Source of the DNA: Bugula neritina
Lineage: Eukaryota; Animalia; Bryozoa
Length of the DNA: 64,000 bases
Assembly: GCA_964035545.1 (NCBI GenBank)
Contig: OZ037771.1
Coordinates: forward strand, 6,171,190-6,235,189
Reading direction: 5' to 3'
The notes below the pieces were generated by a model. The model did no database searches. It worked only from the letters and a program-made list of their open reading frames with translations, and was not told the DNA's origin. Below, one piece after another: positions 1,507-60,655 of the stretch. Made by a program: the position numbers and the translations under genes. Numbering within the stretch: position 1 is the stretch's first letter; each line of letters begins with the position of its first letter.

Positions 1507-4500
1507 TTACTCGAAAGGAGATAGAAGTTTCTGAGTATCTTCAGACTGCCGGCCCATCTGTTTATAAAAGTAAAATGGGTTTCTGGACTACAATACAAAT
1601 AAAATCATTGCTTAGCATATAATATAAATTATAATTTTAGATGGTAACGCTGCTGATATATCACTATCGAAACATGTATTACAGCTGCACTTGATTGTAT
1701 TGCTTGAGCTGTTCACACATATTTAGCTTGCTCAATAAAACTTCAGTAATCACATTTAGAACAAGAAGTCTTGCTGAAACTATTTTGTTACAGAACTTAT
1801 CTGAGTTTTCCAGTCTACAGCAATCAGAAGTAAAATATCTTGACTAGACTTTTTATAGTTCTAGATTTTATAAGAAAATTAAACAAACATCAATAAAAGT
1901 TTTTGTCAACAGAGTGGAGATGTGAGACTTACTAGTATTTATTGTGATAAGGCTGTGGATACCAGCAAAACATTTAAATGACAATTTTCTTACTTTTTAC
2001 TAACAAAAATAAAATTTACAGCAAACTTTACAGAGTTGCTTATATACAATCTTGCATTAGTATTCTCTCAAATTTGAGTGCAAAGTAATGCAATACAATT
2101 GAATCTATTACAAATGGCTATATAAATATGCTTTACAGCATGAAGGAAAAAATATTTTTTATATCCATGGCTCCAGTGAAAATACTGTTCACTTTATTAC
2201 ACATCAATGGCCTACTATGCAATTTTCCATGGCAGGATAATATTATTTAAATATAGGTTTATTAACTTGTCAAGTTTGTTACAGATAACCTACTTCATTA
2301 TGGTCATTTGGGGCATTACAAGGTTGAATATAAACTAACAACTCTTAAATATTTTGTATAAGTAAGCTTTTCTTACCATTTAAAAATATTATAAATTGTT
2401 CATGTTTGCCTTTCTTTAATGTTAAAACACAGCTGCTGCTGTTATTAAGACTTTTTAAGTAAAAACCAACTATTCCAAAAGTTTTATTAAATTATTTAAG
2501 ACGCTATCAATTTTGACAAGTTGTCTAGAATTATTTAGTATGCAAAATACCACAAGCACATAGTAGAGGTTGAGTAGCCATATTGCTTTGTTCAACAGGT
2601 AATAATGATAATTAAAAGGTTTGTTATAAGAAACTCAATACCTTAGATCTGGGCGCGTCTGTATGCCTGCTTCGAGTGTGCTCTGTGCTCCAAGTATCTT
2701 TCCTCTTTCTACAACAGACCAGCAGCTAACTATCAATTTGAAACAGAAACAACATATGGCAATGAGTAAGATATTGCTAAATACACCTCTCTAGATTTGT
2801 ATGGGTATCAAGAAGAAGAAACATGTTATTAGAGTTTATAAGAGTGTGTCTTGTGTGCACAATACTGCTATTACATAATAAGTTAATTTTTATTAGCGAT
2901 TTATCTCCAATGTTTGTTTTTATTCCAAAAATAAAGTTGAAAGTTTAATATCAGCAGGTGTTAATAATGACAGGCTAAAATCCCGATGAAGAGTGAATAC
3001 AGCAGTTTTACTTGGCCACTCAAAAAATTTCCGCAGTGCTAAGGCACAATGCAAATTGATATCTCTACTGGCATCCATTTAAATACACTAAAAGTGATTC
3101 CATGGCTTTCCAAAGGCACCATGTCTTAACTAAGTACATAAATTATTTGAGATTTTCCTTCTGATGAAAACTCTGTGCTTCTTCCAGCTTAACCAATAGT
3201 AGCCTATACGTGAATAACTTTAATATACTAAATAAATGGACACACTACTAGACAACCTAACTCTTTATCAATAAGACAAAAAGTTGTAGCAAGTCACAAT
3301 GGGTCGATTCGAGGCCTTTTAACTATTATACTGCCCATTTTAAATCTACCAGACAGAATTCTTAGAAAACTAATATGAATAATTTGTTGCAGCCAGCCAG
3401 TTTTGTTTTGCCTGGTTTTGGCTGCCCAAGACCACATGACTTCTAATTACAAGTTATACAGACTAAGGTCTTACGAGACTGACCTATCAAGGAAAAAGGC
3501 AATGATGACGCCAACTATTAGTAAGAGAACTGCTCCTGCTCCTGAGACAGCAGCAATAACGGAGCCCGGCAGCACCTGATGATGTGATATATCTGCAAGA
3601 GAAAAGGAAAAACAGTAAGCAATTGCAGCTGCCCAACTCTGCTAGCATAGCGCCGTGACAGCTCACACTGAACTCTAGTATAGAAGCTTCGACATTTTTG
3701 TCTTGTTTTCATATATTTTACTGTCAAATGAAGATTAAAAGTAATAAATATAATTTAGGTAAAAATAGTTTAGTTACCAACGATTACTATAGCATTCTTA
3801 GCTCATGCTTATTTTCCCAGTGGTTTACCAACAATTTAAGCACTGCAGGTACAGCGGGAATACTAAATTGTAGAGAAGACATCTAACTACTTAGTGAGTT
3901 ACACCTGGGTTAGGGAAGACAATTACTAAATAGGCTTTTTCTGAGTTTAAATAAGCCAACTATAGGTTTTCCATGGGTTTAGAGAAGACAACTACTATAT
4001 AGGTTATACATGGGTTTAGAGAAGACAACTATTTTCTAGGTTATACTTGGGTTTAGAGAAGAAAACTACTATATAGAATAAACCTGGGTTTAGAAAAGAC
4101 AACTACTATATAAGTTATACCTGGGTTTGAGTCCAGCAGTTCACAGACAGACCCCGAGGCGTACTCAGGACATCTGCACTCAAACTTGCCAATCTTGTCT
4201 ATGCAGGCTCCACCATTGTAGCAAGGGTGATTTGCACACTCATCTATATCCACCTCACACAATACCCCCTTGTACCCCTTCTCACAGATACAGTTGAAAC
4301 TCTCACCTTCATCTACACACCTGGAGACGAGAAGATGCACAGTAATAATAGTATAGTATGAATGGTATTACTACTGAAGTCGTGGATTGGAACCAATGGC
4401 CTTCACCTATTGGTGATGTTAAGAAGAGCATCCAGTCATAATTGCTCCTGTGCCACATATGAATAAGTCCTTAGCTCACTTTAAAAAACCCTTCTGTAAA

Positions 4501-7500
4501 GTTTTTCTTTACAGAAGGGTTTTTTCTATACAGCTGAGTCAAGCTAGCTTTGAAATTGAGTTAGTAACCAAAACCAGTGGCGGAAAAGGTGCAAACCCCA
4601 GCCCAGGTGAAGTGCAGTCCCCAAGCCCAGTCTAGTGCAAGGAAAATTATACACCTTCCATCAGGGGTTCTCACAGAGATGGCGACTATAAGCTTGCGTG
4701 AGTTTATAGATAGTATGAATACCTCACATTATACACACATATTGCGTATTGAAGACAAGATCAGACATTCTATGAGTAGCATGTACTAAATTTAGAATTT
4801 ATGTTGTGTCAATAGTTTATATTATATAACAGATGATAATAACTACTTAAATTGGTGCTAAGGTATTATTAAGGCATGTATTACACAAAAAATTGTTCCA
4901 TTACTTTGCCCACACATAGAATAGCATGTATTATATGTGACCTAAAAGAAACATGTAGAAAGCTGAGAAACCTACTTTCCATGCATGCAGGGTGAGCTTT
5001 TACATGATTGGACAGACTTCTGACAGAAGACACCGTAATATTTCTCGTTGCATTCGCAGGTGAACCTGTTGACCTGGTTGATGCACACCCCGTCATTACG
5101 ACAGGGCTGACTAGCACACTCATCCACGTCATCCTCACACAGGTCACCATGGAAACCTGCAATACTTTACTAGAAGTTATTGTGAAAACGTTGAAGCAAG
5201 GTCAGGTGCTCACAGGTGCTTTGAAACTAAAACCTGTCTGAAATAAGCTTTTAATTGATTTCTTCAATGCTCATTATACTAAATTACTAGAGTGGGATCC
5301 TATAACTTGTAGGACAAAGTAAACTGTTGCAGACATCCTTTGTAGCCAGTATATTTTGCTGCAGATATATATTGTGCGTGTATGTAGTTAGGCTCACCTT
5401 CTCTGCAGACACACTCAAAATCTCCATTCCCTGCATCTACACAGTCAGCCCCATTCTTGCACAAAGCACTTCTACATGATTGTATTTCTTGTTCGCAATG
5501 CTTCCCACGGAAGTGGTGAGGACATTCGCACTTGTATGTATCTTCTAGTGTTTTACATATGCCTGCAAATTAGAAAAGCAAACTTAATAAAATGTTTTAG
5601 GCAATGCTTGTTGCAGCGAATGAAATATCATTTCTAAACTTCCCCATTTTGAAATCCAAATAACAACTTATATAACCTCGGTGTTATTTTCACTATGTTA
5701 CTGCATATATGACCTACATAACAATACATTAGCTATTATAGTAATGAAATGTATCAAATGTCAACAGCAAAGCTTTGCACGTAGTAAAAAGAACCAAAGA
5801 ATTCAGTGAAGTGCAATAGGCGCAAAAAATATTCTCAACAAAAGTACGAGTTGTTTATTTATTATACTAAATACTTTTATTTCATGGAGCATATCATATA
5901 CTAAGTAACACAATTTATTCAAACTTGAATAATGTTTTACAGGTGGTTAGTATCTACTGCATAGACAATATATTCACCCTATGAGTATTTTATTCATAAA
6001 TCAATATGACAAGTGGCCTAGCCGAAAGTTTGAACATAACGTCCCAGTGCTTCAAGCATAGAAGCTGTGAAGGGAGAAAGTGAAAAAGAAGTTAACAAAG
6101 GAAAGGTTCACAAAGGAAAGGGGCAGATAATGATGTACCTCCATTTTCACATGGATCCTCAACACACATGATGTTGTTCTGGCAATGGTGGCCATCCCAA
6201 CCCGTGGCACACTCACATTGGTAGGCATTAATCAAATCAACACACTTGGCATTGTGCTTGCAGGGATCACTATCGCATTCATCTACATTGATGTGACAAT
6301 GATGTCCCACAAACCCTATAAATATAGCATATTTGAGAAGATGACAGAGAAGATGAGAAACAATACTAACTGTTATTAGAGAACTTTAACTAGTTGGTGT
6401 AAAATACCAAACTTGTAAACGTGTATCTGAATATAGCCATTTATATTACAGTCACACACTAACCTGGCGGGCAAATACAAACGTATCCGTCTATTTTATC
6501 ATGGCACACTCCTTCATGTTCACAAGGTCCACTGGCACACTCATTACTGTTTATTTCACAAAACACACCAGCAAATCCTGGCATACATTCACAAGAATGT
6601 CCGTTAACCTAAAGTAAACAGCAACACAGTAGCAAGGCATAACATCTTGTATAGTAACAAGTTGTTGTGGTTGTACGAGTTGAGAGGAGTTGCATAAGCT
6701 GACCTGGTCCACACACACAGCGCCGTTGAGACAGGGGCTGCTCTCACACTCATCTACTTCCTGTTCGCAGTGAAGTCCCTCATAGCCAGCTAAACACTCA
6801 CAGCTGTACTCGTTAACATCGTCAATGCACTTGGCCTACAGAGAGCACATTCTAAGATAGAAAAAAGAGTAAACACACAACATTTCAATATAGAAGACGA
6901 TGTATTAATGCTGAGAATAATCTATCGGTTATTTAAGCAATACCACACTAACAGAAAACTTCTTCAAAAGTAGGTTAGGCATAGGCAGCATTGCATTGTC
7001 TTGCAAAAATCAAACATGCTTTTCTTAACCGTATTTCGTTCTTTAAAGCAAAAAGTACAGAAATATTTGTAAAACTACAGTTTGCGCAAAAGACAGTTTT
7101 ATTTCATAGTAATTTAGGCATAATAAACAACATTGTAATGAGGAGTTGTGGCACCTTGTTGAGACAAGGTTCACTCCTGCATTCATCAATATTGTGGTGA
7201 CAAGTAACGCCATCGTATCCGGGAGCACAGTGGCAGAGAAAAGCGTTAATCAGATCTGCACAGATACCATGGTTCTCACAAGGCAAGGAGTAGCACTCAT
7301 TGATGTTCACCTCACAACGTAAGCCTTCAAACCCTTTTTCACACTCACATGTGTATGAATCTACCTGCAACATAGTGTCACATGTGTATGAGTACCTGTA
7401 ACATAGTGTCACATGTGTATGAGTACCTGTAACATAGTGTCACATGTGTATGAGTCTACCTGTAACATAGTTTTATCAGCAGAGTTTGGAAATTACTGGA

Positions 7501-10500
7501 CACTACATAAGAGGAAAAAAGAGAGAGAAACTCCTTAATTGTATTTTTGTTTAACATATTAATTTAAGAATGTGAATTTAAACTAGATTATCAGAAAGAC
7601 AACATTTTTACCAACATACACACATACAAATTTATCGAGTAATCTCATTGCTTAAATTATAATATAACAACATCGAAAACTTGTTCAAACATTTTACTCA
7701 AGTGTCAAGTTATTTTGACCAAGTGAGTCTGTATCTTTATTCAGAAGTTGTGTTGTTTCATACTGACTATTGGGTACCTTATCTATACATTTAGAGTTGT
7801 GTTCACATGGCAAACTGACGCACTCATCGATATCTATCTCACAGTTGAGTCCTTCAAACCCATCGGCACATTCACAGATGTACATGTCAGTGGAATCAAT
7901 GCAATGAGCTTCGTTGAAACAGGGTGTGCTAGAGCATTCATCTATATCATCCTCACACACTCGGCCCTGCAACAGTGTGAAATCAAACCACAAATGGTAC
8001 TTTATTCAAGTTGAGTTCATCTGTTTGTCTTTATTCACTGCTGATATATATTACTCGCTGTAAACACTCTGAAAATATTTGTATATTTGTGTCCAGCACT
8101 ACAGTTTTGGCAGTACCCCTAATGATGTTCGTGATATTTGTCAGTTTAACATACAGAAAAATACTAGTAAAATCTTCACAAAAGTGAATAACCAGAAACT
8201 GAAATTACCCGATGTTATTGCAATGGAAGAGGCAAAAAGCTTTGGTATTGGACCTTTTTAGTGTTACAAAAAATAACATACACATGTCTTTCATAAGAAA
8301 TGACAAATTGTATATGCCACTGGGAATTGGCAAATTACACATAAAACAGTAAACTAAAATCCAACCTATATTACTAAACTCTGTACAGTTAAATTTCATT
8401 GTATAAAATGCTAGTCTCAGAAATGGAAAATTCACCGAGCCGAAAAATGTCATGAAATGAATAACCTCCGCACTCTTAAATATGGTTGACTGAAAGTTAC
8501 CTGTAAACCTCTCACCAGGACTTACCATAAATCCAGCTGCACACTCGCAGGTAAACTGGTTCACCTCATCTATGCAGAGTCCATCATTCAAACAAGGGTT
8601 GCTGGCACATTCATCTATATTTATCTCACACTCCTGACCTACAAATGAGCAATCAATCAAATTGATATAGAAAATACAGTAAACAAACTTCTGCTTTCTT
8701 AACGTGTTTCGTGAAAAACTAGGCTCAAAAGAAATGTAACCCTTTTAAATATTGTGTTTTAATGCAGGCTTTGAAGTTAAAGCTAATAGTTGGAATCCAG
8801 ATATGATAAACTTGTTAAAGAGGTTATGACCTTTAAACTTCAATTAGAGTTTAAAGGTCATAACTCCATCATAAATTTAATTTCAATTCACTAATACAAC
8901 AAGCAAACCATGAATAATATTCTACAGTAAAAGTTGATACTAAATAAAAAGAATAACAGGAGTAATCTGAGTTGTGAATTCAAACTCATTATTTCACATA
9001 CCAACGAATCCAGCAGCACATTTACAGCTGTACTCATCAACACCGTCTATACAAACGGCGTCGTTACTGCAAGGTGCACTATCGCATTCATCCACATCTA
9101 CCTCACAGTTATACCCTTCGTAGCCAGCAGAGCATTGGCAGGCGTACGAGTCAATGCCATCCATACACTGGCCACCATTTGCACACGGCCATGATGAACA
9201 TTCATTCACATTGAGCTCACAGTGAATTCCTAAAATATAGGATATATCAAGAGTGCAATGCAAATGGCACAAAATAGAGTTCACCAAACCTAAATGGCTG
9301 TATTATGTTATTCGTTGTGCTTTACATTAAATTAGAAAATGAGCATAGAAAAACCCAGACATTAATTGTTATACAAATGAGGCTCAACGGCAGAGAGAAA
9401 CACTTACAATGAAAACTACATAGTAACTAGTTTGTGATGAAACATCAAGACTCTCAAAGAATTCAAGCATTGACTATTTAACCAACAGTGTGCTACTGGC
9501 CAACAATTATTTTATAGAAATATTCTAAATTCAAATGACGTTCTATGATGTATTACTGCATGCTGAGCCAGTCAGTATGTAAACGCCCTACCAGCAGCTG
9601 TTAAGTTCTCCGACAAAACAGACACACTGTGATAATGATATGGTATAGTTGAAGGTCTGATTGTCAGATTACAAGAGCTATTAGAGTGACAGTATTTTAA
9701 AAACAACCTTATCACAGCATAAGATTTACTGTGAGTAACAGAAGTAGGTGCAGTAATGGAGAACCTGAGAAAAGCTTGTGTTTTAGATTATAAATGTAAT
9801 AAAAGAAGTTATGTTCCCGTGAGGATTACAACCAGTAGCCCCAAATTAAATTTTTTTAAGAAAATAAAAAAATTTAGGCTATAAAAATTTCCCAACTACA
9901 CCACATAAATGTAATAAGCAATATACTCTTGCACTGGTTTTAGGTGATAATTGTAAGCTAAATAGTGAATAGATTACACCTTGGCACAGTAAGGAGTACA
10001 TGATTCATAGTGGACAGGTAAAGAAATAAAACTTATTCACAAAACAACCTTCAAATCCAGGAAGGCACACACACTTCCATTCATTGATGCCATCTTTACA
10101 CAACGCTTCATTCATGCAGGGGTGACTGTGACACTCGTCTATGTCATGCTGACAGTGTATTCCTTCAAAGCCAGGCTCACAGTGACATATATACCCATCT
10201 ACCTGTATAACAGACACTATATACTTGTATAACAGATACTGTCTACCTGTATAACAGATACTTTCTACTTGTATAACAGACACTATCTACCTGTATAACA
10301 GATACTATTTACCTGTATAACAGATACTATCTACCTGTATAACATATACTATCTACCTGTATGACAGATACTATATACCTGTATAACAATGAACTCAAAC
10401 CAGAAGAATTTATCAAACTGCAAGAACACAACAACAAAAAATTCCACTTCTTTAAAAAGTTCCAACAGAGAATGAGTTACCATGTCTTCACAAGAAGCTG

Positions 10501-13500
10501 CGTTGTAACAGGGGCCACTCTCACACTCGTTAATGTTCTCCTGTAAGAAATTAGAGCTATATTAAAATTACAAGAAACAGCTTCACTGCTAAAATTCTAA
10601 GGTTTAATCAAATGAAAATACAATTACTACTCACAGTAAAAACTTTAAATTAGTTGACTTACATATAAAGCTCTCCATGACATGCAAGAGAGATTACAAC
10701 TCACTCAGCTAGCACATAGAGATAAACAAGGTAATAAACTATGAAACATGTTACCTGACAGTGAGTGCCTTGGAATCCCGGCAGACAGTTACACTGGTAG
10801 CCGTTTACACCGTCTAAGCAGAGGCCACCATTTTGACACGGATGTGATGAGCACTCGTCAATATTGATAGAGCAGAGAGAGCCTTTAAAGCCAGCCTCAC
10901 AGTTGCAGTGAAACTCAGCCACCTGGGAATTTAGAAATACAGTGCTCTTTCCATATCTCACTAAGTTACGGGTCTCGAAACCTCAAATCGTGACATAGTA
11001 AAATACCAGATTTAACAAATGGATCCGTTAAATTCGTTCATTTTGTCCCTACACATACATTATAAGCCACAAAATGGGGGTCCAAGCCTTTTTTGTGAAC
11101 TATGAAATTTCATGAGAAATGGATCAGTGAGATATGAAGGGAGCATTGTAATGTGAAACTGCACAGCATTCCATAGGCAACATATGACACTATAATAATG
11201 AAGTATTGTATGCTTACACCATCGACACATGTTCCATTGTGACAGTTGACACCTTTGCAATCATCAATATTAGACTGGCAAAGAGGGCCGTGCCATCCTG
11301 CTGGACAGTCACATCTAGATTGAAGATATAGCAAAGTATAGTAGAAGCTAGACTGACATGTGAAAACAATGTCCGACAGATAAAGTTAAAGGAGACATAA
11401 AAATAATTAGAAATAAAGAAGTATTTGAGAATGAGAGTAATTAGGAAGATTGAAATACCTGAATCCATCCACCTCATCTATACAGGCAGCGCTGTTATGA
11501 CAGGGATGACTGTGACACTCATTGAAGTTGATTTGGCAGCGTTTACCAACCCAACCGGGTTTACATCTACAAGACCAGCCAGCTACCATGTCTAGACAGT
11601 CACCTGTGTGAATAAGGTAAATTATACGTGCATTGTGTACCCTATAAAATACTTAGTTTCTAAAAGATATAATATAATATAAAACTATTCCATACAAACA
11701 AAATGTTCATGCATCAAGTTTAAAAATTACAATTCTAAGCTACCAACTTTAGTGGTTCACACAATGCTCATGAAATCCAAATTTGTTTTGGCTATTCACC
11801 ATTGCAGGTCAACTTATTGCTAGAGTCATATTCATGATAGAAAGGAGAAAAGATAATAACAAGTTTATGGCACCTTCGTTGAGGCACGGCGAACTGATAC
11901 ACTCGTCAATTTCCCTCTCACAGTTCAATCCAGTGTATCCTTCCTCACATAAACAGTTGAACATGTTAACTTTATCTTCACAAGTGCCGTGGATACAGGG
12001 AGAGCTGGCACACTCATCTATGTTTGTCTCGCATGTCAAACCTTCAAACCCAGCTAAGCAGTCACATTGGAAGCCATTTACCTCATCTCTGCAAAAGCTC
12101 TAATGTAAAACACATGCTGTGAACGCACACCAAGAGAAGTACATCAGGTTGTAGTTAGATAAGCATTCAAAACTCGAGAGCAAACTCATTACATTGTGCT
12201 CCTTCCTAACTGCAAACAAACCTAAAACAGCAAACCTGCAATGTCCACCATTTTGACATGGATGCTTATTACAATCATCAAAGTTGATTTCACATCTCTC
12301 ACCAACAAAACCATTGAGGCATTCACAGTGGAAAGCGTTCACACTGTCAATACAAGTAGCCCCGTTCAAACAAGGCCCCTTGGCACAATCATCTATGTTC
12401 ACATCACACAGATCTCCGCCCCATCCTATAATAAAAATGTAGTCACATTAATAAACGAGAAAGAATGGAATTACAAGTTCCCACAGAAAGGTGTGCAGGA
12501 ACAATAATTTTTGATTAAGATCAGGTAAAAACTAATCACAGATTATCAACAAAGTGATAATTTATCACATTTTGAAAGTCGTTTTAGATTAAAAAATAAC
12601 AGGAAACATGGTACAATTGCCAGAAACCAGTTGTTGGTTTATATCCTTCTACCCTTTCTCCCCACTATTGCCTATCCTAACATTTATATATACCAAGTGA
12701 CAAAGTTATTTGAAAGAACTATACTCTGGCTAATTCTAACTATCGTGAGTGTATAAAAAAACACTATAAAATATAGCATATGTTCTTTAGTTCAAATTGT
12801 TGACATACTAAGTAAAAATTTTATATTTGCTTTTGAATAGTAGTCGTTTGCATTTATACACACCACAAGTGAGCATAGTTGATGTGTCCAAAAGACATTC
12901 CACATACCCACGTCACAATGACATCTGAATTCATTTTCCAAATCTATGCAGAGACTATTCTGAAGACAGGGCTTGGAGGAGCATTCATTGATATTCACTT
13001 CGCAGATTAAACCCGTATATCCTGGTGAGCATTGACATTTAAAGTTCTGGCTTTCACTAATGCATGTTCCCGATATGCAAGGTTCAGATTCACAAAAATC
13101 AGTTTTTTGAAGACACTGTTTGCCATAGTATCCAATTTCACACTTGCAGGAAAACTCATTTATATGATCGGTACATTTGCCTCCATTGAGACAGGGTTCG
13201 CTTTGGCATTCATCAATGTCATGTTGACATAACTCTCCAGTATAACCAGGAATACATTCACATACAAAGTTATTGAGTTGATCGACACATCTACCACTAT
13301 GTTCACAAGGAGAACTACTGCACTCATCAACTTCAACAGTGCAACGTATACCAGACCATCCTTCAGTACATTGGCATTGCCAATAATTTGGAAAATCCAA
13401 ACAAGTAGCTCCATTTTCACAGGGTTGGCTGTAGCATTCATTTACTTCTTGATCACATTGAATGCCACCCCATCCATCAGAGCAAGAACATGTGAAAGAG

Positions 13501-22500: not shown

Positions 22501-22874
22501 GTAGAAAACGTATTTATAGCCTTTCTGACTGAGAATGTTGCTAAGAAATCTAATAAGTAACAATATCAGCTTTGTTCTACAAATTCTGAGAACTGTAGAA
22601 ATATCAGCAAAGAAATGAAACGAGTAAAACATGTTCCTTCCATGGAAACATTCCATCACAAAGAATCAAAAATACTAAGAGCTTTGTCCAAAAATTTGTG
22701 ACGAAGAAATAGCATGCTTAGAAAATTAAAAACATTGAAAGGAAGCTGTGTATTTAATGTGGCAAGGAAATAGAATGTCTCTTTAAAGATACAGCCCTAC
22801 TGCAGAAGCACATCTACCTACCCATCTGCCATGCAGAAATTTAGAGAGATAGAGGAGGAAGGAGGAGGGAGAGT

Positions 22875-22914
<40 letters not shown>

Positions 22915-22921
22915 AGAGGGA

Positions 22922-22977
<56 letters not shown>

Positions 22978-25900: not shown

Positions 25901-28900
25901 ACATATACTGCGCTATAGATATCATAGTAGTATATTTAAGTATTATTAAGATATCAGATTTACCATGGTGATGGAAAAACTTCAAACTAGAAATATTGTC
26001 ATTTTAAATCATACAGCACGAGACAAATAGAAGTATGTCATGCGTACTTACTTTGATGTAGATGCACATGTAATACTTATTGTTGTGTAGATGTACATGT
26101 AATACTTATTGTTGTGTAGATGTACATGTGGCACTTACTGTGAAGTAGATACATATGTTGCATAATTATGACTCTCGCGCTGACACGCTACCATACAGAT
26201 TCTACTTGTCGCAGGAACGGGTATCTGCAGAGTAAAAGGAAGAGTTGTCTCAGACACACAGCCCTTCACCGCCACGTCTCCAGCACCAGCAGAGTGACTG
26301 TTTCCGGTTGTCGGAGATCCTGCAGAAACCAAGAGCATCTCTTAGGATGGCAAGTTGCCAGCTCCCACCATACTTTGCTAGAGATATGGCAACTAAAAGA
26401 GCTAGTTCAACTAGTACCCCTCAGACACACTTTGCCGTAATGTCAATAGCAACGTAAAATGTCAGCCATTCTTAGAAATGTCCGAGCTTTCTGTACGGCG
26501 TTGCGGCACGTCAGGATCAAGCACTGCCTGATTAAAAAAATTAATCGGGCTCCTATTGGACAGTAAGATGTTTACATCAACTCATTGAATATAAATGTCC
26601 AAGGAGGTGGCATAGATCTTACCCAATACCGGACATTAAGAATTTCAACCCGGACACGTTGAAAATGGATGACATTTGATGGTACCGTCAAAGCAACGGC
26701 AAAGTGTGAATCCGGCCATAGAGAGCATACCTTTCAGCTGAAATATGGCTATAGTGTTGTGTCCACCACACGTTTGTTCACTATCATCAGAACAGTGAGT
26801 GCTGCATCCGCCATCTTCTACTTTAGGGTACAAGCCGTAATCGTCATCACAGTAGCATTCGTCACTGTTAGCAAATAGGAATACAGTCAACATGAGGGTA
26901 GCGAATAGGAATACAGTTGGCATGGGATCAACGTATAGTAATAGCAATAGTAATATGCAAATCAGTAATATGTTAATCCTAGCTTATCAGTGTGCTAGCA
27001 ATGGGGTAGCATGGGGCTAGTAGTGCTTTAGCAATACGTTAGTATTGAGTTCGCAATGCATTGGCATTGTGGTAGCTTTGTATTAGCAGTGTGTTGGTAT
27101 TATAATAGCGCTGAGTCAACGCTATGATATCAATATTTCAAAGTTAGGGAAATATTAAGTTGACTTCCAGCTGGTGGGTGTGTTTACTTACACTTTCCAG
27201 TACTTCGGCCATCCAGTAAGTAAAGTATTTGCTTCAGTTTTCATGTATATGGTCTCAGCTCTGTATGTAGTCCAATGTCTATGTAGTCTCGTGTCTATGT
27301 AGTCCCATGTCCATGTAGTGTCATGTCTATGTAGTTCCATGTCTATGTAGTCTTATGTCTATGTAGTCTCATGTCTATGTAGTCTCATGTCTATGTAGTC
27401 TCATGTCTATGTAGTCTCATGTCTATGTAGTCTCATGTCTATGTAGTCTCATGTCTATGTAGTCTCATGTCTATGTAGTCTTATGTCTATGTAGTCTCAT
27501 GTCTATGTAGTCTTATGTCTATGTAGTCTTATGTCTATGTAGTCTTATGTCTATGTAGTCTCATGTCTATGTAGTCTAAGCTCTACCTAATGACTGCACA
27601 CTAATATAACGAATACAACACACGTAGTCTAGACTAACCCTGCGCTCAGGCCAGCATACAAAGTACCCTCCTCTTTACACAAGTGAAAGCAGATCTGTCT
27701 AGTCATCTGTCCCTTAGCAACCAACTTCTCCATGTGCCTCAGCTGGGTGTAGTCACGGTAACAGCCTAAATAAACTGCTTGAGGCTTGTGAGTCAGTTCT
27801 GAAACATATATAGATGCAGTTATAGATACATACTCAGACTTTCACTACCTCGAATGATTGTGCAGATGAATTTGTAGTTGCATTAACCTATGGTAGTGGT
27901 TTCAGTCGATTGACACTGTCCCCATGCATCTAATAAAAAATCCATTTGCATAATGCGAAGCATGGAGACGTAGTGATGTACACAGACATATTCATAGTCA
28001 CAGAGATACAACACTACTACATATTACATATTGCTGTTATTTCACACAAGCAGCCTTGACCCTCAAATTTAGTGCTGAATGCACCAAAAAGTGCATAAAT
28101 GTGCTAAAATGTGCTAAAATGTGCTAAATGTGCTAATAGTTGCACTAATGTGCTGAAAAGTGCTGAAAATTGCCCAAATGTGTTCAAGTGGGCTAAATGT
28201 GCTAATAGGTGCCCTAATGCACTGAAAAGTGCTCAAATGTGCCAAAAAGTGCCTAAATGTGTTGAAATATGTTAAATGTGCTAATAGTTGCCCTATAGTG
28301 CTGAAAAGTGCCCAAATGTGCGAAAAAGTGCCTAAATGCGTAAAATGTGCTAATAGGTGCCCTAATGCACTGAAAAGTGCCCAAATGTGCCAAAAAAGTG
28401 CCTAAATGTGACTAGTCCATATTCCGAAGGCCCATTGCTCCAAAGGCGCATTGCTCAGAAGGTGCATTGTTCCAAAGGTGCATTAGTCCAAAAACTAGTA
28501 GACGCGGGATTATATCACGGAGAATATCATAAATTTCGCTCACAATCTTGCCATATTATTGCTAGCTGTGGGTGGCATGTGAGTTGCCTTCTTGTGATTG
28601 CTTAGCCTGAGATTAAGCTATGAAGCTGCCTCAATTAGGGCTGCATCATCTATCAATATAGTAGTGTCCAACATGTTTATAATTTTTTGTCTTCAATGCT
28701 CATATTTACAGATATGAAGATTAATAGTTTAGCAGCTTACAGATAATTTTAAAGATAAAATGTGATAGCAAATAATTAACTGCAAAGCCAGAAATTTACT
28801 ATTGCATTCAATACCAATAATTTTTTGACTCCAACTTCAAATGCAACCTATTTTTATAAACTATGAGGTAAATCTTTACCGTGCTTATCATAATTACAGT

Positions 28901-31900
28901 ACAGTAGACGCAAAATGTTTGCTTGGCTTTAATGTTTTTACTTTAGTTTTTCAGTTTATAAATAGTCAACATGAAGGGCCTATATAAGCTGACTGACTGT
29001 AGCTAGAATAGAATTGCAGTCTCTAGCTGTCGTTTTTATATGAACTGTGAACTAAAAACACTAATTAAATGCTAGTAAATGATATAAAAATGGTCAAAAA
29101 CCAACATATCTGAGTAACATTCAGGAAAATTAATAAAGCCAACAACTGCCAAAACTTGAATGTTAAAGGGGTATAATAAGAAAAAACTGTAACGTTTATT
29201 GTGTGTAAGCCTTTTTCTATTGTGCCTAATATTTTTCAAGTGTTCTGCAGATAACAAACAAACTAATAAAAAAGGTTACAATTGACCTGTTGTATTGAAA
29301 CACAAAATTAAATAAATAATACATTTTATAAATGATATAATAATTTATAATGAATGTTTTCACATTATATTTAGCAAACATCAGTGTATCCTATATACAA
29401 AATTGACTTTTGTAATTGAACAAGCACTGCTACTCTGCAGGAAAGCTTCAAGTAAAACTATTAAGGCCAAAATAACAGTTGGGTGACTATCAAAATCTAA
29501 ACTTCATGCTTGTTATATAATTTGACTACCCAACAAAAATAGAGTAAGGCATGTATGATATTCTCAGTGATATAATCCTGTGTCAACTAATTTTCGGACT
29601 AATGCACCTTCGGAGCAATGGGCCTTCGGAATATTGCTCCTTCCCCCAAGCAAGCACTACTGACACATGTTTGAATTCTGAATGATATTTCATATGCATC
29701 ATATTTCCCAGGTTAAACATATTTGTAGTGTATAACTTGTAAAGCTGAAATGGTTCCAAAGTATTAAAATAGCTTGACTAGTAATTTAGATTTATATTAC
29801 TCTTAATGTGTAAATAATATCTATAAATTAAACTACGACATTTTCAATGCAGTAAACAGAGTTGAAGAATTTAAACTTCCTGACAACAGACTGAGCATAG
29901 CATGTAGGAAAGTTTTCGGTGAGCCCAGCAGCGCATATAGTCAGTACTGCTGACCAGGCAGCATGCTGACTACATCATGATGCCTGTGTCACACTGATGA
30001 CTTCACATTGTATGTCTTACCATGACAGAGGATGACTGAGAGACGAACAGACATCGTACTCAGACTCTCAGCTGCCTTAGCAGTAAACAGTTTGTTGTGG
30101 GAAGCAACTTTCACCAGAGAGTCTTTGTCAATTCCCTCTCCCACACCAACCACCATCACCACCGTCCCTTCACTCTTCAGCTTTTCTGCCTCTCTCACAG
30201 CTTCCTGGGCATCGCCCTGGGGCCCACCGTCAGTAAGTATTAAAACTGAAATCACAGGATATACATAAAAACTTAGTCTTTAATAAACCTTTAAACTCAC
30301 AACTTGAACACAAAATTGCTTTCCTAGAAACAAATGTCAACAGCTTAAATGTAAACAAATAGTCATTTCAATAAAGTAAATTTATTTTAAATTTCATCTT
30401 AAAAATTAATTCAAATAACATAACTGTTCATAGAATATATACATATTTTATATTTCAAGCAAGCAAATTCAAAGTTCATTTATTCTGCCAGAAGACAGGG
30501 ATGCGATACAATACACTGTATAGAGTAGCCCATGGCATGCAGACAACAGTACACTGCAGGTAGAAGAGACTGTAGTCTGACTAGCCAACAACATACCAAC
30601 ATGAGGTACGGATGACCTAGCTCCATTACTAGCAGTGAGTACATGCTGCCGAACTTTCACAAGAGCAGCATACACGTCGTCAGCATTCCCAACAGATGAG
30701 TCAAACTCGTAGTCCAGAACTATCTCTTGCAGGAATTTAGTGAGTGTTTGCTGATGGGAGTAAAACTCTGTTTCATCGAGTTGTATGATTGGTTCAGCCT
30801 TATAAGACACAGCACATGATTGGCTAGACAAGCTCAAGTTGGGCAGTGTGCATTATTAACTAGATGAAACATGTTAGATGACTGGTAATGACGCTAACAA
30901 ATCTTGTAACATAAAGGAATGAGTCTATTTGATAATGATTGCATCCTACCACTATACCGTAGATTTGCAATACAGAGACTCCACTATACAGTAAATATAT
31001 TCCACTATACGGTAAATATACTGATACTATACAGTAATATACTTCACTATACGGTAAATATACTGATACTATACAGTAATATACTCCACTATACGGTAAA
31101 TATACTGATACTATATACTAAATATACTCCACTATATGGTAAATATACTGATACTATACACTAAATATACAATACTAGATAGTGAATATAACCCGAATAG
31201 ACTAACCTGGTTATATGAGAGAAAGAGTAGAGCCACCCTAACATGATCCGTACTGTACTCCACAGAATTCACAATGTCAGCTATCAACTTCATTTTATAT
31301 CTGAACTGCAAAGCTACTTCGGCAGCTGATAGGTGTAAGTTTGGATTAATATCAACAACAAACACCACTTCGCCCACTGACTTGTGGCATGCTGCAATAC
31401 AGAAAACAACAACATTGTAACATAGAACATTGTGTGCTACTTATTACATATTTTAAACCATATTACATAGACTAGGGTGATAGAGAATGCAGGGGTGATA
31501 GTTACAAGTGAAACTGGAAAGAATATTAGTAAACCACTACTACACTATGTCTTAACTAAACAGTCCACTTTCAACCGTCATTTCTCTATAGATGAGTTAA
31601 AATCAGTAAGCAGGGTGTGTGTGTGTGTGTGTGTGCGCGCGCACGTGCGTGCGTGTGAAACTTTCTACATAATTATATATCAGTAAACTTACCATCATTA
31701 GAAAAATAAAGTTTTTTATTCAACCTACAGATTTAACAGACTTCAATAACTTTATATACAATGTAGGTATTGGAACAGTGGCCTTCAGCTACAGCATTCT
31801 GCTTATTTAAAATCGACTAGTTCTACAATTTTTAGATGGACATGTTTTTAATGAAATTACTCAAAATTTATAAAACTAAGTAATATGACCTATTTAGTAT

Positions 31901-34900
31901 TGAAGTATATAAGAAAGAAGTAAGTGGACTCACTAAAATAGCCAACACCAGTGTCATAGAGAGCATTCCTCGAGTAACCCCCACAGAACTGATACCTCCT
32001 GTCCTCTGCCTATATTCAACAGTTTGAGTTATGTTAAGGAAACTGAGGTTACATAATCAATGGCTATCCAAATTTAAAAATTGAAAATCACGTAAAGCAG
32101 CACCGAGTTAGTGGTCACTGAGTGCAGTGATTTGGAGATGAGAAAATAATGTGTGTAAGAGTACTGTACCCAGTCACCCCCAACTCGGTGCTGCTTCTAG
32201 CCATACTCAATCTAATCAAGAACAAGTCAAACAAGTCAAATACCATTGACAATATAGTTGAGCGTTGAATGCAACTAATTTTTTAGAAAAAACTTTTTAG
32301 TGTAAAAATGTACCAGTTACGAATAGGCAACGGTGTGTGACTTGATTTATGATTAAGCAGCAGTCTATGACTGAAGTTACAAGCACGAAGCGGTCTCTAC
32401 TGAAGTTACAAGTAAGAAGAAGTGTATGACTTGAGTTACAAACAAGAAGAACTTGAGTTGTAAGTACAAAGAGTACCTCCACTCTGCCACAGGAATCTAC
32501 ACACTCCACATCGTCAACTGCTCCAAACAAGCCAACTCTTTCAGCACAGTAACAGTTGAGCTCCAGCCCTCTGCTGTGGAGGTGTTTATTATCTGAACTT
32601 CTAGAATGTTACGCATACAGTTACTGGGAAGGCATATTATACAAAGGTTAGTATAATTGATAATATACCATACAACTATGATACACAGATAATTTCTAAC
32701 TATATTTACAACATAGTGCAGAAACGATTACATTTAATTTATAATGCGCTATGATAGAATATACTGCAATATATAATATACTGCTATAGAATGCACTGAT
32801 ATAGAATGTACTATTATATAATTTACTGCTGTAGTATTACATGCTATAGCATTACATGCTATAGAACATACTGCTATAGAATGTACTGTTATAAAATGTA
32901 ATGCTATAGCATGTACTGCTGTAGCTTATACTGTTATAGAAGTAACTGCTATAGAATAACCTACTTTATGCTAATTGCTGCCATCGGAGCATTAGTCAGC
33001 CTACATTGATGAATGCAACTCAAAACAGGCATAGACTGGTTTTGACGCTGAATACCAGTTATTTCTCTGTTGGCAGGAAACTCTCGGTAACACCCAATAT
33101 AAGGGGATTCGTCCAGGTCTAGAAACAAATGTAATTTATTGGCAGTACAGAAATATATAGAATAAAGTGATATGTTCAAGTCTAAATACACACCATATAC
33201 ATATTTTATAGACTTTACAAAAATATATAGATTATAGAATATAGAGCCTGCAGGTCAAAACCAACATAGTGCTGTTAACTTGTCAACAAATGAGTGATTT
33301 AGCAACTGTACATATAAATATATACAATAAAAAGTGATAAAAAATCCCAACTATTCTTTATTGTGTAAAAGCGCAATAATAATTTGAATAACTACCAATA
33401 ATTTGACGGTAGGCAACCTGATGGTCAGGGAACACAACTCTTGTATATCCTTCACATGTACTCGATCTTTGGTCACATGACTGAGTGATGTCATCGTATA
33501 CATAGCCACTATCACACAGCACTTCCTCTTGCTTACCTTCTTTACATAACAAGTACCTAATAAAGTAGTTGTAAACAGCTATGTGAGTGATTTACAACCA
33601 GCCATGATATGTACTTTGTATAATCATATGTTTATATTATATATAATATATATGTAATATAATATGTATTATATCATACACATATTATACTCATGGCTGT
33701 ATATAGTGCCTTTACCACTAACCTGAATATGCACCTTTTATATATAACAGCTATAACCTGCTATTGACCAAGCAAACCCTGAGCCTAATATATATTTCAG
33801 CAATTAGGCTAGCTTGTTGAGATGAATTTCTAGAAAAATCACTAACTTGGGATTTGTCCCTTCATTATCAGAAGTCAATAAGCGATCAATGACATAATTC
33901 CATGACTTATACTATATTATGTTTGATGCTGAAGTATTTGAGCTGAAACAGTTGCACCTGCCTGTCTACTCTACACCAGAAAAAATGTACAGCACCATGC
34001 TAATAAAATTATCCTCATACATTATCATACTGATTAGATTACAGTCATTATGTCACTTAAAATATGGGATATTATTTGTCACAAAATATCCACCATTCTC
34101 ACAACAAATGAGGTGACTGGTGTTTTAATATAGATGGTCAGTAATACACTTTTCCATAAAATATAGAAACAGTAAAGTCATTGGCAAATGTATTTAACCC
34201 CAAATTTTCTGTGACAAACAGTGAATATAACTAAAAAAGCATCTTTGTTAACTCAGAACAATTAAAAGAAACGAATTGACCAAAACAAGAATCAGTTATA
34301 ACATAACATATACCTGTCGCAATGACAGCAATGTTGAAAAATATATTGAGCATTGCCAGAAATGAAGCTTGGACAGTTTTTCATCCCATGAACACCAGTT
34401 GGGCAATCTGATAACACAGGCATTCACAAATTTGTTCATAAAATTGACAAGTAAATGTCAAACTATAATTTAGACAAAGAAGCTAAGAAGAGGTTCCCAT
34501 TTTTGTATACTATGACAAAAATTGGTAAGTTTAACCAAAGCTACATTACCATCTTAAGCAAGTTAAATTAAGTACACAACCTGCTTTAATTTTTAACATG
34601 AAAAAAGGTTTTAAACAAACAGTTGGTACCTAATACCCTTGAAAAATTGTAAATTGAATTATGTTGAAAAGTAAAATACATCAAAAAATAAAATCATAGT
34701 AGGTATGCATTAAAATCAGACAACAAAGCCTCTCAAAAATATTTGATAATGTATTCTCAAGATTCATCTTTTAAGTAATTGGTTAGTAAAAGTTCATGTT
34801 TAAACATGAGAATGCCTGTTTTGTGTAACAAGATTTATCAAGTTACAAACTAGTTATAATATGTTGCATCAATATAATGAGAATAATGTGATCAGAATAT

Positions 34901-35054
34901 TATGTACTTTGACATGAAACAGAATATGTAAATTCTCACCTTCCTTTTCGTCAAATTCGCAGGCAAATAAATATTTCATCAGCAAAAATTGAGCAGCTAA
35001 CAAAAGGCAGCCTTCTCTTGTCAGCTTCCCCATATAGAAGATTTTAAGGCACAT
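1507..35054 (-). CDS. Giant type I transmembrane protein (~4,200 aa): signal peptide, CBM14 chitin-binding, WSC, vWA, WSC, WSC-like, ~85-90 EGF/cbEGF repeats, TM, short cytoplasmic tail
   Basis: About 42 GT-AG coding exons, phase-compatible at the junctions I checked. Signal exon 35054 (or 35033)-34940. CBM14 34407-34314 and 33556-33396. WSC 33118-32965, 32570-32477, 32009-31934. vWA 31391-31207, 30798-30597, 30245-30021. WSC 27798-27639, 26864-26731. WSC-like 26319-26139, 25068-24901. Linker 24312-24227. EGF exons 23923-20102, giant exon 19555-12908, then 17 small EGF exons from 12425 to 4121. TM exon 3592-3484 ([25 protein letters not shown]). Tail exons 2708-2642 and 1557-1507 ([39 protein letters not shown]). 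Repeat count is estimated from coding length at ~38 aa per repeat. Confidence 0.85.
3897..4130. repeat. ~37-bp minisatellite (~6 copies) derived from an exon/5' splice-site junction
   Basis: Unit is approximately ctgggtttagagaagacaactactatataggttatac. The first copy overlaps the donor of the last EGF exon at 4120/4121. Confidence 0.85.
4350..4710 (+). mobile_element. tRNA-headed SINE, copy 1 (degraded head, longer body)
   Basis: Shares ttggtgatgttaagaagagcatccagtcataattgctcctgtgcca-atatgaataagtccttagc and the 3' segment tctcacagagat-g-gactataa with the copies at 51035-51230 and 59530-59730. Confidence 0.8.
7340..7472. repeat. ~31-bp minisatellite duplicating a 3' splice site plus the exon start
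   Basis: Unit acctgtaacatagtgtcacatgtgtatgagt, ~4 copies, continuous with the acceptor at 7364/7365. Confidence 0.85.
10195..10390. repeat. 22-bp minisatellite (~9 copies) duplicating a 3' splice site
   Basis: Unit ctatctacctgtataacagata, which reads ttatacag|GTAGAT on the minus strand. The functional acceptor is the copy at 10202/10203. Confidence 0.88.
12908..19555 (-). CDS. Single 6,648-bp internal exon encoding ~2,216 aa (~56 tandem EGF repeats) of the giant EGF gene
   Basis: Lies within the 2293-aa ORF 12792..19673. Acceptor ctacag|GT at 19555 and donor G|gtatgt at 12908, phase 1-1. Repeats follow the D(I/V)(N/D)ECxSxPCxNGGxCxDxxxx(F/Y)xCxCxxG(F/Y)xGxxC pattern. Confidence 0.92.
22851..23170. 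repeat. 320-bp polypurine/polypyrimidine tract: (GA)n, (GGGAGA)n, (GGGGGA)n
   Basis: Almost entirely A/G on the plus strand, with a single T near 23052. Confidence 0.97.
23585..23725. repeat. ~35-bp AT-rich minisatellite, ~4 copies
   Basis: Unit atattatataatatagccctatgatactatatat. Confidence 0.9.
25289..25812. mobile_element. hAT-type MITE (non-autonomous DNA transposon)
   Basis: TIRs CAGGGTTGAGGTCAATT and AATTGCCCCAACCCTG. Flanking 8-bp target-site duplication caatatat (25281-25288) and caatatac (25813-25820). Internal aattacaattac subterminal repeats in both orientations. No ORF. Confidence 0.85.
26417..26717. mobile_element. ~300-bp MITE with imperfect TIRs, possibly PIF/Harbinger-like
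   Basis: Left cacactttgccgt...aaatgtcagccatt and right aatggatgacattt...acggcaaagtgtg are inverted copies. The right end reads GGCCGGATTCACACT on the minus strand. TSD not clear. Confidence 0.6.
26731..27798 (-). other. WSC carbohydrate-binding domain (best conserved of three WSC or WSC-like modules)
   Basis: YLGCYRD...[32 protein letters not shown]...[22 protein letters not shown] matches the WSC consensus. Related modules at 31934-33118 (YIGCY...CYC...CGG) and 24901-26319 (degenerate). Confidence 0.88.
27262..27577. repeat. 16-bp minisatellite, ~19 copies
   Basis: Unit atgtctatgtagtct(c/t). Confidence 0.95.
28072..28410. repeat. Degenerate ~10-bp satellite (aaa(t/a)gtgc(t/c)) with higher-order structure
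   Basis: Runs of aaatgtgcta, aaaagtgcct and taatagttgc units. Confidence 0.85.
28419..29634. mobile_element. ~1.2-kb non-autonomous TIR element with ~100-bp inverted termini
   Basis: The left end atattccgaaggcccattgctcc...gcattagtccaaaaactagtagacgcgggattatatcacggagaatatcata is the reverse complement of 29555-29634 (tatgatattctcagtgatataatcctgtgtcaactaattttcggactaatgcaccttcggagcaatgggccttcggaatat). The interior is AT-rich and non-coding. Confidence 0.85.
30021..31391 (-). other. von Willebrand factor A domain with a degenerate MIDAS
   Basis: [17 protein letters not shown] ... VRVALL ... [22 protein letters not shown] ... [30 protein letters not shown] shows the classic vWA strand/helix pattern. 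The DxSxS motif is replaced by DINPN. Confidence 0.85.
30975..31165. repeat. ~40-bp minisatellite in a vWA intron
   Basis: Unit atactccactatacggtaaatatactgatactatacagta, ~5 copies. Confidence 0.88.
32755..32956. repeat. Degenerate ~15-bp minisatellite
   Basis: Repeated tactgctatagaatg-like units adjoining the donor at 32964. Confidence 0.75.
33396..34407 (-). other. Peritrophin-A/CBM14 chitin-binding domain at the N-terminus of the giant EGF protein
   Basis: The spliced sequence [56 protein letters not shown] fits CBM14 six-Cys spacing (C..C..Y..C..G....C..G..(F/Y)D....C....C). Confidence 0.7.

Positions 35055-57734: not shown

Positions 57735-60655
<2,921 letters not shown>

Follow-up and report, generated by a model that had tools for sequence, protein, structure and literature searches.

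Gene model and evidence for a single transcription unit

The minus strand of the analysed window, a stretch of 64,000 nucleotides from the bryozoan Bugula neritina, very probably carries one conserved and transcribed bryozoan gene that encodes a type I membrane protein of 4,163 aa, in which a distal head is borne on about 87 EGF modules that form an uninterrupted rod. The structure of the gene, its domains, its transcription and its conservation are shown by the data below. From the N-terminus, the protein comprises a signal peptide, a CBM14 domain, a WSC domain, a VWA domain, another WSC domain, a Cys-rich module, about 87 EGF modules, a transmembrane (TM) helix and a tail of 50 aa.

In the model built here, the coding span (1507..35054, minus strand, as for all features below) is divided into 42 exons with a CDS of 12,492 nt. 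All introns are of the GT-AG type, and the only stop is that at the end of the frame. The model starts with the ATG at 35054 and ends with the TAA at 1509-1507; a prior sequence-only reading of this DNA had placed the gene at 1507-35054 and was exact at both ends. A hexamer resembling a poly(A) signal, AATAAA, is found 23 nt past the stop (1479..1484), which is weak support in AT-rich DNA.

RNA contigs reveal four minus-strand GT..AG introns (26320-26730, 24313-24900, 23924-24226 and 23346-23814). These introns span the junction between head and EGF rod, joining the second half of the second WSC domain to exon 12, and exon 13 successively to exons 14, 15 and 16. Besides, upstream of exon 11 an RNA contig of 1,606 nt continues for 1,443 nt, a length that matches predicted exons 1-10 (1,394 nt) plus a short UTR. 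The gene is single copy in its own genome, its domains are cut by introns in matching phases across exons, and the frame is preserved by all 41 of its 41 introns.

Conservation was observed in other organisms, where one locus (L005) carries exons 7-13 and 15-20 in colinear order with 48-89% identity, a second (L006) carries exons 6-13 and a third (L011) carries exons 36-41, including the TM exon. All these orthologous exons (6-13, 15-20 and 36-41) share their order and boundaries with the present gene. Together with the RNA introns over the head-EGF junction, they therefore argue for one conserved gene. That two neighbouring genes, one for the head and one for the EGF-TM part, or an assembly artefact, were misread as one frame is extremely improbable. 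Indeed, the joint between exons 12 and 13, absent from the RNA contigs, would leave room for two genes, but L005 and L006 conserve both exons side by side, RNA links exons 11-12 and exons 13-16, and exon 16 terminates in the middle of an EGF module with the frame kept over every intron. Hence, the continuous spliced frame, the single gene and the domain order put forward by the sequence-only reading are borne out by the RNA joints, the colinear orthologous exons and the phase-matched split domains.

Domain composition of the head

The head was scanned against Pfam exon by exon. Exon 1 (34940..35054) is predicted to hold the start codon and a hydrophobic, signal-like N-terminus. Its ATG is the first after an in-frame stop, its hydrophobicity peaks near residue 16, and its donor, G|GTGAGA, is the top-scoring one. 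Exons 2-3 (33456..34407) encode a CBM14 (peritrophin-A) domain of the chitin-binding type. Exon 3 matched Pfam CBM_14 with 27.5 bits (E 3.6e-6), above the cut-off of 22.1 bits although it holds half a domain, and the splice re-forms the C-x5-C junction. The donor of exon 3 is ambiguous (33456 or 33396), and the place of CBM14 in the transcript is predicted from splice logic and from the length of the RNA contig.

The first WSC domain is spread over exons 4-6 (31949..33118), with a Pfam WSC match of 20.5 bits on exon 4; its CGG-containing end lies in the small exon 6, which is conserved in L006 and L009. It is followed on exons 7-9 (30021..31391) by one VWA domain, matched by Pfam on exons 8 and 9 (19.6 and 27.8 bits), single copy in its own genome and recovered over the full exon length with 48-59% identity in five loci (L004, L005, L006, L009 and L010). 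The MIDAS of this domain is non-canonical: the metal site D-x-S-x-S reads D-I-N-P-N here and D-V-N-P-N in an orthologue. The second WSC domain, on exons 10-11 (26731..27798), was matched in two halves (28.2 and 30.2 bits); its exons are 58-77% identical in the orthologues, and the exon 11 donor at 26731 was confirmed by RNA.

Exons 12-13 (24901..26319) encode a conserved Cys-rich module, with an RNA-confirmed acceptor at 26319 and donor at 24901, and L005 and L006 match its core with 68% identity. When a match of this module to PF01822 or to the WSC domains of the gene itself was sought, Pfam returned nothing at E<=10 and BLAST the ECxCDD motif only. In a language-model search, the nearest named atlas clusters were all WSC (0.87, 174 shared features), a sub-threshold result, and the intron position and phase of the module are identical to those of both WSC domains. 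The module may be a divergent third WSC. The CBM14, WSC, VWA and WSC domains recognised in the sequence-only reading were all recovered by the Pfam scan. Its description of a multi-glycan-binding head is too strong: proof of a third WSC is lacking, D-x-S-x-S is missing from the VWA domain, and WSC, a module of PAN/Apple fold, makes contacts with protein as well as with carbohydrate (PMC9024836).

The EGF rod

The passage from head to rod is made by exons 14-15 (23815..24312), which encode an acidic linker and the onset of a first, atypical EGF and are delimited by RNA introns 24313-24900, 23924-24226 and 23346-23814. The array of about 87 modules then occupies exons 16-39 (4121..23345), exons 16-20 having orthologues in L005 and exons 36-39 in L011. 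The proposed 85-90 Notch-type EGF repeats agree with both counts, a local EGF HMM giving 86 strong domains and the counting of cysteines 87-88 units. Of the roughly 87 modules, 67 are exactly 38 aa long, and the mean identity between units is 0.42 (0.43 for adjacent units). The Ca-binding consensus is matched by 51-55 modules, and the rod carries 56 O-glucose consensus sites (C-x-S-x-P/A-C) and 23 O-fucose consensus sites (C-x4-5-S/T-C).

The giant exon 22 (12908..19555; 6,648 nt) comprises 55 complete EGF units and two partial ones. It lies in an open segment of 2,299 codons (12795-19691) in which Pfam EGF was matched with E=0 over 48 stretches, along with hEGF and EGF_CA. In this exon, the splitting into units and the HMM both locate a non-EGF insert of 64 aa (15816..16007) between Cys 3 and Cys 4 of one EGF. 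Its GC content is 0.32 compared with 0.40 in the flanks, and no in-frame GT/GC..AG intron that would give back a normal EGF was found in it. The EGF HMM tiles residues 662-4071 with this insert as the sole gap, and no LNR, ankyrin, laminin-G, CUB, SEA, ZP or DPY module was found in the model protein.

Membrane anchor and cytoplasmic tail

The juxtamembrane residues and the TM helix are encoded by exon 40 (3484..3592), whose acceptor is strong and whose donor reads AG|GTCAGT; it is found with the same boundaries and 74-77% identity in L011 and L012. The single helix spans about residues 4088-4112 (hydropathy peak 2.7) and begins 17 residues after the last EGF. Exon 41 (2642..2708) supplies the basic, stop-transfer segment of the tail (RKRKDTW...) and has a counterpart in L011, where a 22-codon exon about 770 nt after the TM exon shares the TGTTGTAG acceptor, the basic cluster, a Trp and the AAG|GT donor. 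Exon 42 (1507..1587), unique in the genome, is predicted from a phase-0 join and a TTGTAG acceptor to provide the last tail residues, an NPFY motif among them, and the TAA. The minimal tail expected by the sequence-only reading is indeed short, but it measures 50 aa instead of about 40 and is not featureless, with its juxtamembrane basic cluster and predicted NPFY (NPxY-type) motif. Since no convertase site (R-x-K/R-R) and no SEA or NRR module was found in the whole protein, the ectodomain probably remains anchored.

Nearest designs and candidate function

Among known designs, MUA-3 and MUP-4, receptors for cuticle attachment in nematodes, and the fly protein Dumpy come closest. MUA-3 and MUP-4 fasten the nematode epidermis to the cuticle at the apical surface, MUA-3 being a protein of 3,767 aa with 52 EGFs, one VWA and a TM (PMC2150771, PMC2150763). 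The span of these 52 EGFs is put at up to 150 nm by the authors (PMC2150771). Like the present protein, both are giant single-pass type I proteins with an ectodomain dominated by EGFs of the Ca-binding type and one VWA domain. They differ from it by two SEA modules near the membrane, for which the 17 residues between last EGF and TM leave no room here, by intermediate-filament-associated tails of 223-328 aa, as against 50 aa, by LDL-A modules in the case of MUA-3, and by a VWA in mid-protein with neither CBM14 nor WSC, whereas the present gene has a distal CBM14-WSC-VWA-WSC head and about 87 EGFs. Orthology to MUA-3/MUP-4 was not detected at the sequence level, and no orthologues of these receptors outside nematodes are reported in the papers that describe them (PMC2150771, PMC2150763). 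Dumpy, a huge, EGF-rich and membrane-anchored apical matrix protein, joins the fly epidermis to its chitinous cuticle (PMC2930355). It consists of triads (EGF-DPY-EGF) plus a ZP domain and has no CBM14, WSC or VWA, whereas the units of the present rod are contiguous 38-aa EGFs with no DPY and no ZP match. The suggestion of a tether to the exoskeleton, made from the sequence alone, thus has a precedent, but these closest designs had been overlooked. Given this precedent, an exoskeleton tether would be no new kind of system.

Bryozoan cuticle contains chitin. Loci of the PF03142 type are present in the genome, which indicates that the organism can make this polymer. By analogy with the nematode and fly proteins we infer, with a confidence just short of even, that the protein serves the epidermis as an apical-matrix receptor that tethers the epithelium to the chitinous cuticle or senses it, its ligands, location and mechanical role included. 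The membrane-anchored EGF rod could extend up to about 250 nm (at about 3 nm per EGF) and would place the head within the chitinous cuticle. In this matrix, chitin would be bound by CBM14, and further glycans or proteins by the WSC and VWA modules. In this way, the epithelium could be fastened to the exoskeleton and strain transmitted or reported. On the cytoplasmic side, the basic cluster and the predicted NPxY-type motif might recruit a PTB-type adaptor serving cytoskeletal coupling or endocytic turnover.

Little is known of the molecules that fasten lophotrochozoan epithelia to exoskeletons of chitin or calcified material, and this gene offers a conserved, transcribed candidate for such a link, with chitin as candidate ligand and a simple tail. 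If the tether reading were true, it would be the third independent giant EGF rod bridging epidermis and cuticle, after those of nematodes and insects. It is doubtful that the protein goes further and is a convergent bryozoan counterpart, assembled from other parts, of MUA-3/MUP-4, Dumpy and the Wsc sensors at once, i.e., a quarter-micrometre rod with a chitin-binding tip acting both as tether and as sensor of strain or damage. Such a protein would be the first animal receptor reading a chitinous cuticle via CBM14 and WSC.

Some features sit less easily with a tether. CBM14 is one small domain. The tails of MUA-3/MUP-4 are long and bind intermediate filaments, as against 50 aa here with a predicted NPFY exon, and an NPxY tail suits an endocytic receptor equally well. 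As for the reach of 250 nm, junctions between non-Ca-binding EGFs may leave the rod flexible and much shorter.

Alternative functions

An unlikely alternative is an endocytic or pattern-recognition receptor, whose head, raised high over the membrane, would trap chitin or beta-glucan of fungi or microbes, or pieces of shed cuticle, and whose NPxY-type tail would lead to clathrin uptake via PTB adaptors, as in LDLR or CED-1/Draper. CBM14 and WSC in the head are in line with this function, as is a tail that is short and, apart from the predicted NPFY, has no module. However, no known scavenger receptor requires a rod nearly as long as one of about 87 EGFs, the exon with NPFY is predicted only, and the gene is single copy whereas invertebrate immune receptors are often expanded.

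Somewhat less likely again, the protein or its shed ectodomain could be a scaffold in the chitinous, lightly calcified wall, organising chitin and Ca-binding EGFs in the manner of Pif/BMSP and of EGF shell proteins. VWA and a chitin-binding domain of the peritrophin type are the hallmark pair of the molluscan Pif/BMSP, which likewise belong to a lophotrochozoan exoskeleton (PMC11291548), EGF-rich shell matrix proteins are known (PMC9290575), and about 51-55 of the present EGFs are of the Ca-binding type. But Pif/BMSP are secreted, with no EGF rod, TM or WSC, and their VWA precedes the chitin-binding domains, whereas the order here is CBM14-WSC-VWA and the TM and tail exons are conserved in the orthologues. 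Neither a furin-type site nor a SEA/ZP cleavage module was found in the protein, an acidic mineral-binding region is lacking, and the head had no tblastn similarity to any of 120 EGF-rich proteins, the best generic matches.

Improbable, too, is a wall-integrity mechanosensor, an animal counterpart by design of the fungal Wsc proteins, in which a wall-embedded WSC head, a stiff, spring-like glycosylated stalk, a TM and a short tail for signalling would report strain of or damage to the cuticle to the epidermal cell. The layout of Wsc1, a mechanosensor with WSC head, stiff glycosylated rod, one TM and short tail, is indeed similar (PMC9024836, PMC7915640), the head holds at least two WSC domains, the rod carries 56 O-glucose consensus sites, and GT90-family genes are present in the genome. 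However, the fungal Wsc sensors are small proteins of an unrelated lineage with a Ser/Thr-rich mannosylated stalk instead of an EGF array, their tails have no similarity to the present one, where NPFY is the sole known signalling motif, and the likeness is one of design only. Besides, such a sensor overlaps with the tether and would be hard to tell apart from it.

Relation to other EGF-rich families

Notch, Crumbs, Eyes shut and the fibropellins were the top generic matches (30-44% identity) and have the EGF type in common with the present gene (hEGF, EGF_CA, O-glucose/O-fucose consensus). Their defining non-EGF modules, i.e., LNR/ankyrin in Notch, laminin-G in Crumbs/Eyes shut and CUB/avidin in fibropellins, are all absent, and the placement of the gene outside these families by the sequence-only reading holds. 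No Laminin_G match interrupts the array, where the HMM tiling leaves the 64-aa insert only, and the C-terminus is a TM and a short tail with no Pfam match to CUB or avidin.

A Notch-like signalling receptor or ligand is hardly credible, for although the tandem EGFs carry O-glucose/O-fucose consensus sites and Notch proteins are among the generic matches, there is no Notch/LNR Pfam match and no NRR in the 17 residues between last EGF and TM, no DSL or MNNL module, and neither RAM nor ankyrin, the tail being merely 50 aa. Notch family membership was rejected on these missing domains, and to annotate genes of this sort as "Notch-like" or "fibrillin-like" is wrong.

When a head exon was used for an exhaustive protein search, this yielded no annotated full-length relative, tblastn of the head against the 120 EGF-rich proteins no similarity, and a literature search no publication on this domain layout. 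The exact layout appears new to the literature. A characterised family of identical domain order was not found, in agreement with the sequence-only reading, which had assigned the architecture to none. A predicted "fibrillin-2-like, partial" protein (P0005) of the crinoid Anneissia japonica has six CBM_14 domains at the C-terminus (opposite polarity), no WSC or VWA and no tblastn similarity to the head, but it does combine a long EGF array with CBM_14.

Structure and transcription of the gene

EGF-type open frames were found on the minus strand of the window, including an open segment at 12795-19691 of 2,299 codons, nearly all of them EGF. On this segment, Pfam returned EGF with an E-value of 0 and 48 stretches, together with hEGF, EGF_CA and teneurin-type EGF models, and no domain family beyond the EGF types. 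The gene model was built from codon statistics, splice signals and a strict 38-residue EGF period. Because generic splice-site matrices gave low ranks to the true sites of this AT-rich genome, EGF periodicity was used in their place for splice choice. An automatic exon chain trained on EGF codons missed or misplaced the head (i.e., the part before the EGF array), the transmembrane (TM) helix and several EGF exons, and curated junctions were adopted. The model comprises 42 exons, from an ATG at 35054 to a TAA at 1509-1507, with a frame unbroken over 12,492 nt (4,163 aa) and GT-AG at all 41 introns. These limits coincide exactly with those proposed by an earlier sequence-only reading of the window. 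An AATAAA hexamer lies 23 nt past the stop and weakly supports the predicted exon 42.

Along the minus strand, a hydrophobic, signal-like N-terminus (exon 1) is followed by CBM14 (exons 2-3), WSC1 (exons 4-6, its CGG-containing end lying in a 61-nt exon), VWA (exons 7-9), WSC2 (exons 10-11), a conserved Cys-rich module (exons 12-13), an acidic linker with a first, atypical EGF (exons 14-15), the EGF array (exons 16-39), the TM helix (exon 40) and the tail (exons 41-42). In the head model, the donors of exon 3 (33456 or 33396), exon 5 and exon 6 are ambiguous. The same holds for the acceptor of exon 5, a CAGCAG tandem of the NAGNAG type (32570-32573, minus strand), which could yield two isoforms one residue apart inside WSC1.

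Contigs from four probable RNA runs (three studies) were mapped on 23170-27260, where they cover the exons and not the introns. Four joints resolve to minus-strand GT..AG introns: one (26320-26730) joins the second WSC2 exon to exon 12, and three (24313-24900, 23924-24226 and 23346-23814) link exon 13 via exons 14 and 15 to exon 16, the first clear EGF exon. These joints speak against separate transcripts for the head and for the EGF part, in line with the single gene proposed initially; the exon 12-exon 13 joint was the sole junction not seen among the RNA contigs over this region. Besides, the RNA contig over exon 11 measures 1,606 nt and reaches 1,443 nt further upstream, as expected if the predicted exons 1-10 (1,394 nt) are preceded by a short 5' UTR.

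Two introns of this region carry additional RNA signal. A stretch of intron 12 (25225-25900) is covered by hundreds of short contigs with many loose ends, their summed depth being very high in each of the four runs; it resembles a dispersed repeat element that is transcribed, rather than a part of the gene. Within the RNA-confirmed intron 11, contig depth was observed at 26458-26594 in two of the runs (X1 and X2), with a loose end at 26568; the source may be a fragment of a repeat, or a transcript that is unrelated or antisense. Introns of the gene also contain long repeats of simple or minisatellite type, at 22843-23163, 27264-27577 and 28078-28410, comprising a tract of (AG)n type (~320 nt), 19.6 copies of a 16-mer and an array of a 69-148-nt unit.

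Domains of the head

Database searches were run per exon, the joined translation being used for local counting only. The domain list of the sequence-only reading proved real, since Pfam recognises CBM_14, WSC, VWA and WSC exon by exon upstream of the EGF array in gene orientation. The scores were 27.5 bits for CBM_14 (half a domain, in a single exon), 20.5 bits for WSC1, 19.6 and 27.8 bits for VWA, and 28.2 and 30.2 bits for the two halves of WSC2, all head domains being split across exons. As a third WSC, the Cys-rich module was negative with both Pfam and BLAST; its split between exons 12 and 13 agrees in position and phase with those of WSC1 and WSC2. In the VWA domain, the metal site D-x-S-x-S is replaced by D-I-N-P-N (within 31207-31389), and the orthologue on L005, an unannotated contig from another organism, carries D-V-N-P-N (L005:416-598). 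Because this degenerate motif is kept between species, the canonical MIDAS was lost long ago, and its loss is presumably functional.

Organization of the EGF rod

With an HMM made locally from the repeats of the giant exon itself, 86 strong EGF domains were detected, and cysteine counting gave 87-88 units, 67 of which are exactly 38 aa long. The Ca-binding consensus is fitted by 51-55 units, the O-glucose consensus C-x-S-x-P/A-C by 56 and the O-fucose consensus by 23, and the whole protein contains only five N-glycosylation sequons. Mean identity between units is 42%. Since neighbouring units (43%) are no closer to each other than distant ones, the array is, to judge from these identities, old and not a recent expansion.

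The giant exon 22 (12908-19555, minus strand) holds 55 complete EGF units in 6,648 nt, while introns interrupt the EGFs on either side of it at varied positions and in varied phases. The pattern suggests either large-scale intron loss or an old part of the array that never gained introns. One EGF of this exon carries, between Cys 3 and Cys 4, a 64-aa non-EGF insert (15816-16007, minus strand) with a GC content of 0.32 vs. 0.40 in its flanks. A retained in-frame intron was rejected, as no GT/GC..AG pair restores an EGF; the stretch may encode an inserted loop, or be a non-canonical intron.

Orthologous exons in other genomes

Queried with the giant exon, the word-based protein search returned only generic EGF proteins (30-44% identity), tblastn gave no head similarity, and the exon of the first WSC1 part (WSC1a) had no candidate in the word search. 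This search covers candidates of up to 4,023 aa, vs. 4,163 aa for the model, so that a blank is uninformative on orthologues of the same length. Because of this blindness, and because the claim of novelty rests on absence, an exhaustive protein search was run with the 74-aa VWA exon. Its long matches were generic multi-VWA proteins; the three checked by Pfam (P0130, P0185 and P0265) were VWA-TSP1, bacterial PKD and VWA-only proteins and were rejected as relatives. P0002 and P0005 were likewise set aside for their differing layouts. The latter, a partial 'fibrillin-2-like' protein of the crinoid Anneissia japonica, combines an EGF array with six CBM14 domains, placed at the end opposite to that in the bryozoan protein.

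The sole single-stretch matches, at 42-91% identity, were exon-sized ORFs on unannotated contigs. Exons 7-9 were found on L004, exons 9-11 on L002 and L003, and exons 6-13 on L006, exon 5 not being found upstream in L006 or L009. The 12.4-kb contig L005 carries exons 7-13 and 15-20, colinear and on a single strand; identities are 48-89%, and most of the matches extend over the whole exon. L011 carries exons 36-40, with 82% identity for the last EGF exon and 74% for the TM exon; ~770 nt past the latter lies a 22-codon exon whose acceptor, basic cluster, Trp and donor match exon 41. Because L005, L006 and L011, which come from other organisms, carry colinear orthologous exons, the head-to-rod and rod-to-anchor links are, on exon order, conserved in another species. 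In the B. neritina genome itself, no paralogues of the VWA, TM and tail exons were found, all being single copy.

Membrane anchor, tail and proposed function

Between the last EGF and the only TM helix, which is strongly hydrophobic, lie 17 residues. The tail (50 aa) opens with D-RKRK and includes a predicted NPFY in exon 42, which is unique in the genome; the orthologous contigs stop short of this exon. A convertase site of the form R-x-K/R-R occurs nowhere in the protein. The structure is solid, and for the function we infer, as the best-supported reading, an apical-matrix receptor that would fasten, and perhaps monitor, the chitinous cuticle. The readings that chiefly compete with it are an endocytic receptor for glycans and a matrix scaffold that is shed.

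As first proposed, the protein is not a Notch, Crumbs, Eys or fibropellin, every defining non-EGF module of these families being absent. The closest known designs are MUA-3/MUP-4 and Dumpy. MUA-3 (3,767 aa) comprises 5 LDL-A, 52 EGF, 1 VWA and 2 SEA domains, a TM helix and a 328-aa tail, and together with MUP-4 it fastens the nematode epidermis to the cuticle (PMC2150771, PMC2150763). According to the nematode authors, an EGF is ~3 nm long and 52 EGFs span up to 150 nm (PMC2150771, PMC2150763); by the same measure, the 87 EGFs of the bryozoan protein would span up to ~250 nm. Dumpy, which combines EGF-DPY triads, a ZP domain and a TM helix, acts in epidermis-cuticle adhesion (PMC2930355). The bryozoan head also recalls the molluscan shell proteins Pif/BMSP, which pair VWA with a chitin-binding domain (PMC11291548), and the whole protein recalls the fungal Wsc sensors with their WSC head, stiff stalk and short tail, the fungal WSC domain being a PAN/Apple fold for protein and carbohydrate contacts (PMC9024836). 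However, the domain order of all these proteins is unlike that of the bryozoan protein, and the head is not detectably homologous. The bryozoan gene is a variant among the cuticle receptors with a giant EGF rod, and does not represent a new category. It is also less surprising given how common giant EGF mosaics are in the genomes of invertebrates.

Chitin-synthase-type loci and GT90/POGLUT-type genes are both present in the genome. The neighbours on the plus strand look ordinary, namely a TCTP C-terminal exon (151-285), a GH3-family (GHDC-like) gene (39821-46071) and an EF-hand (centrin-like) gene (59746-60027).
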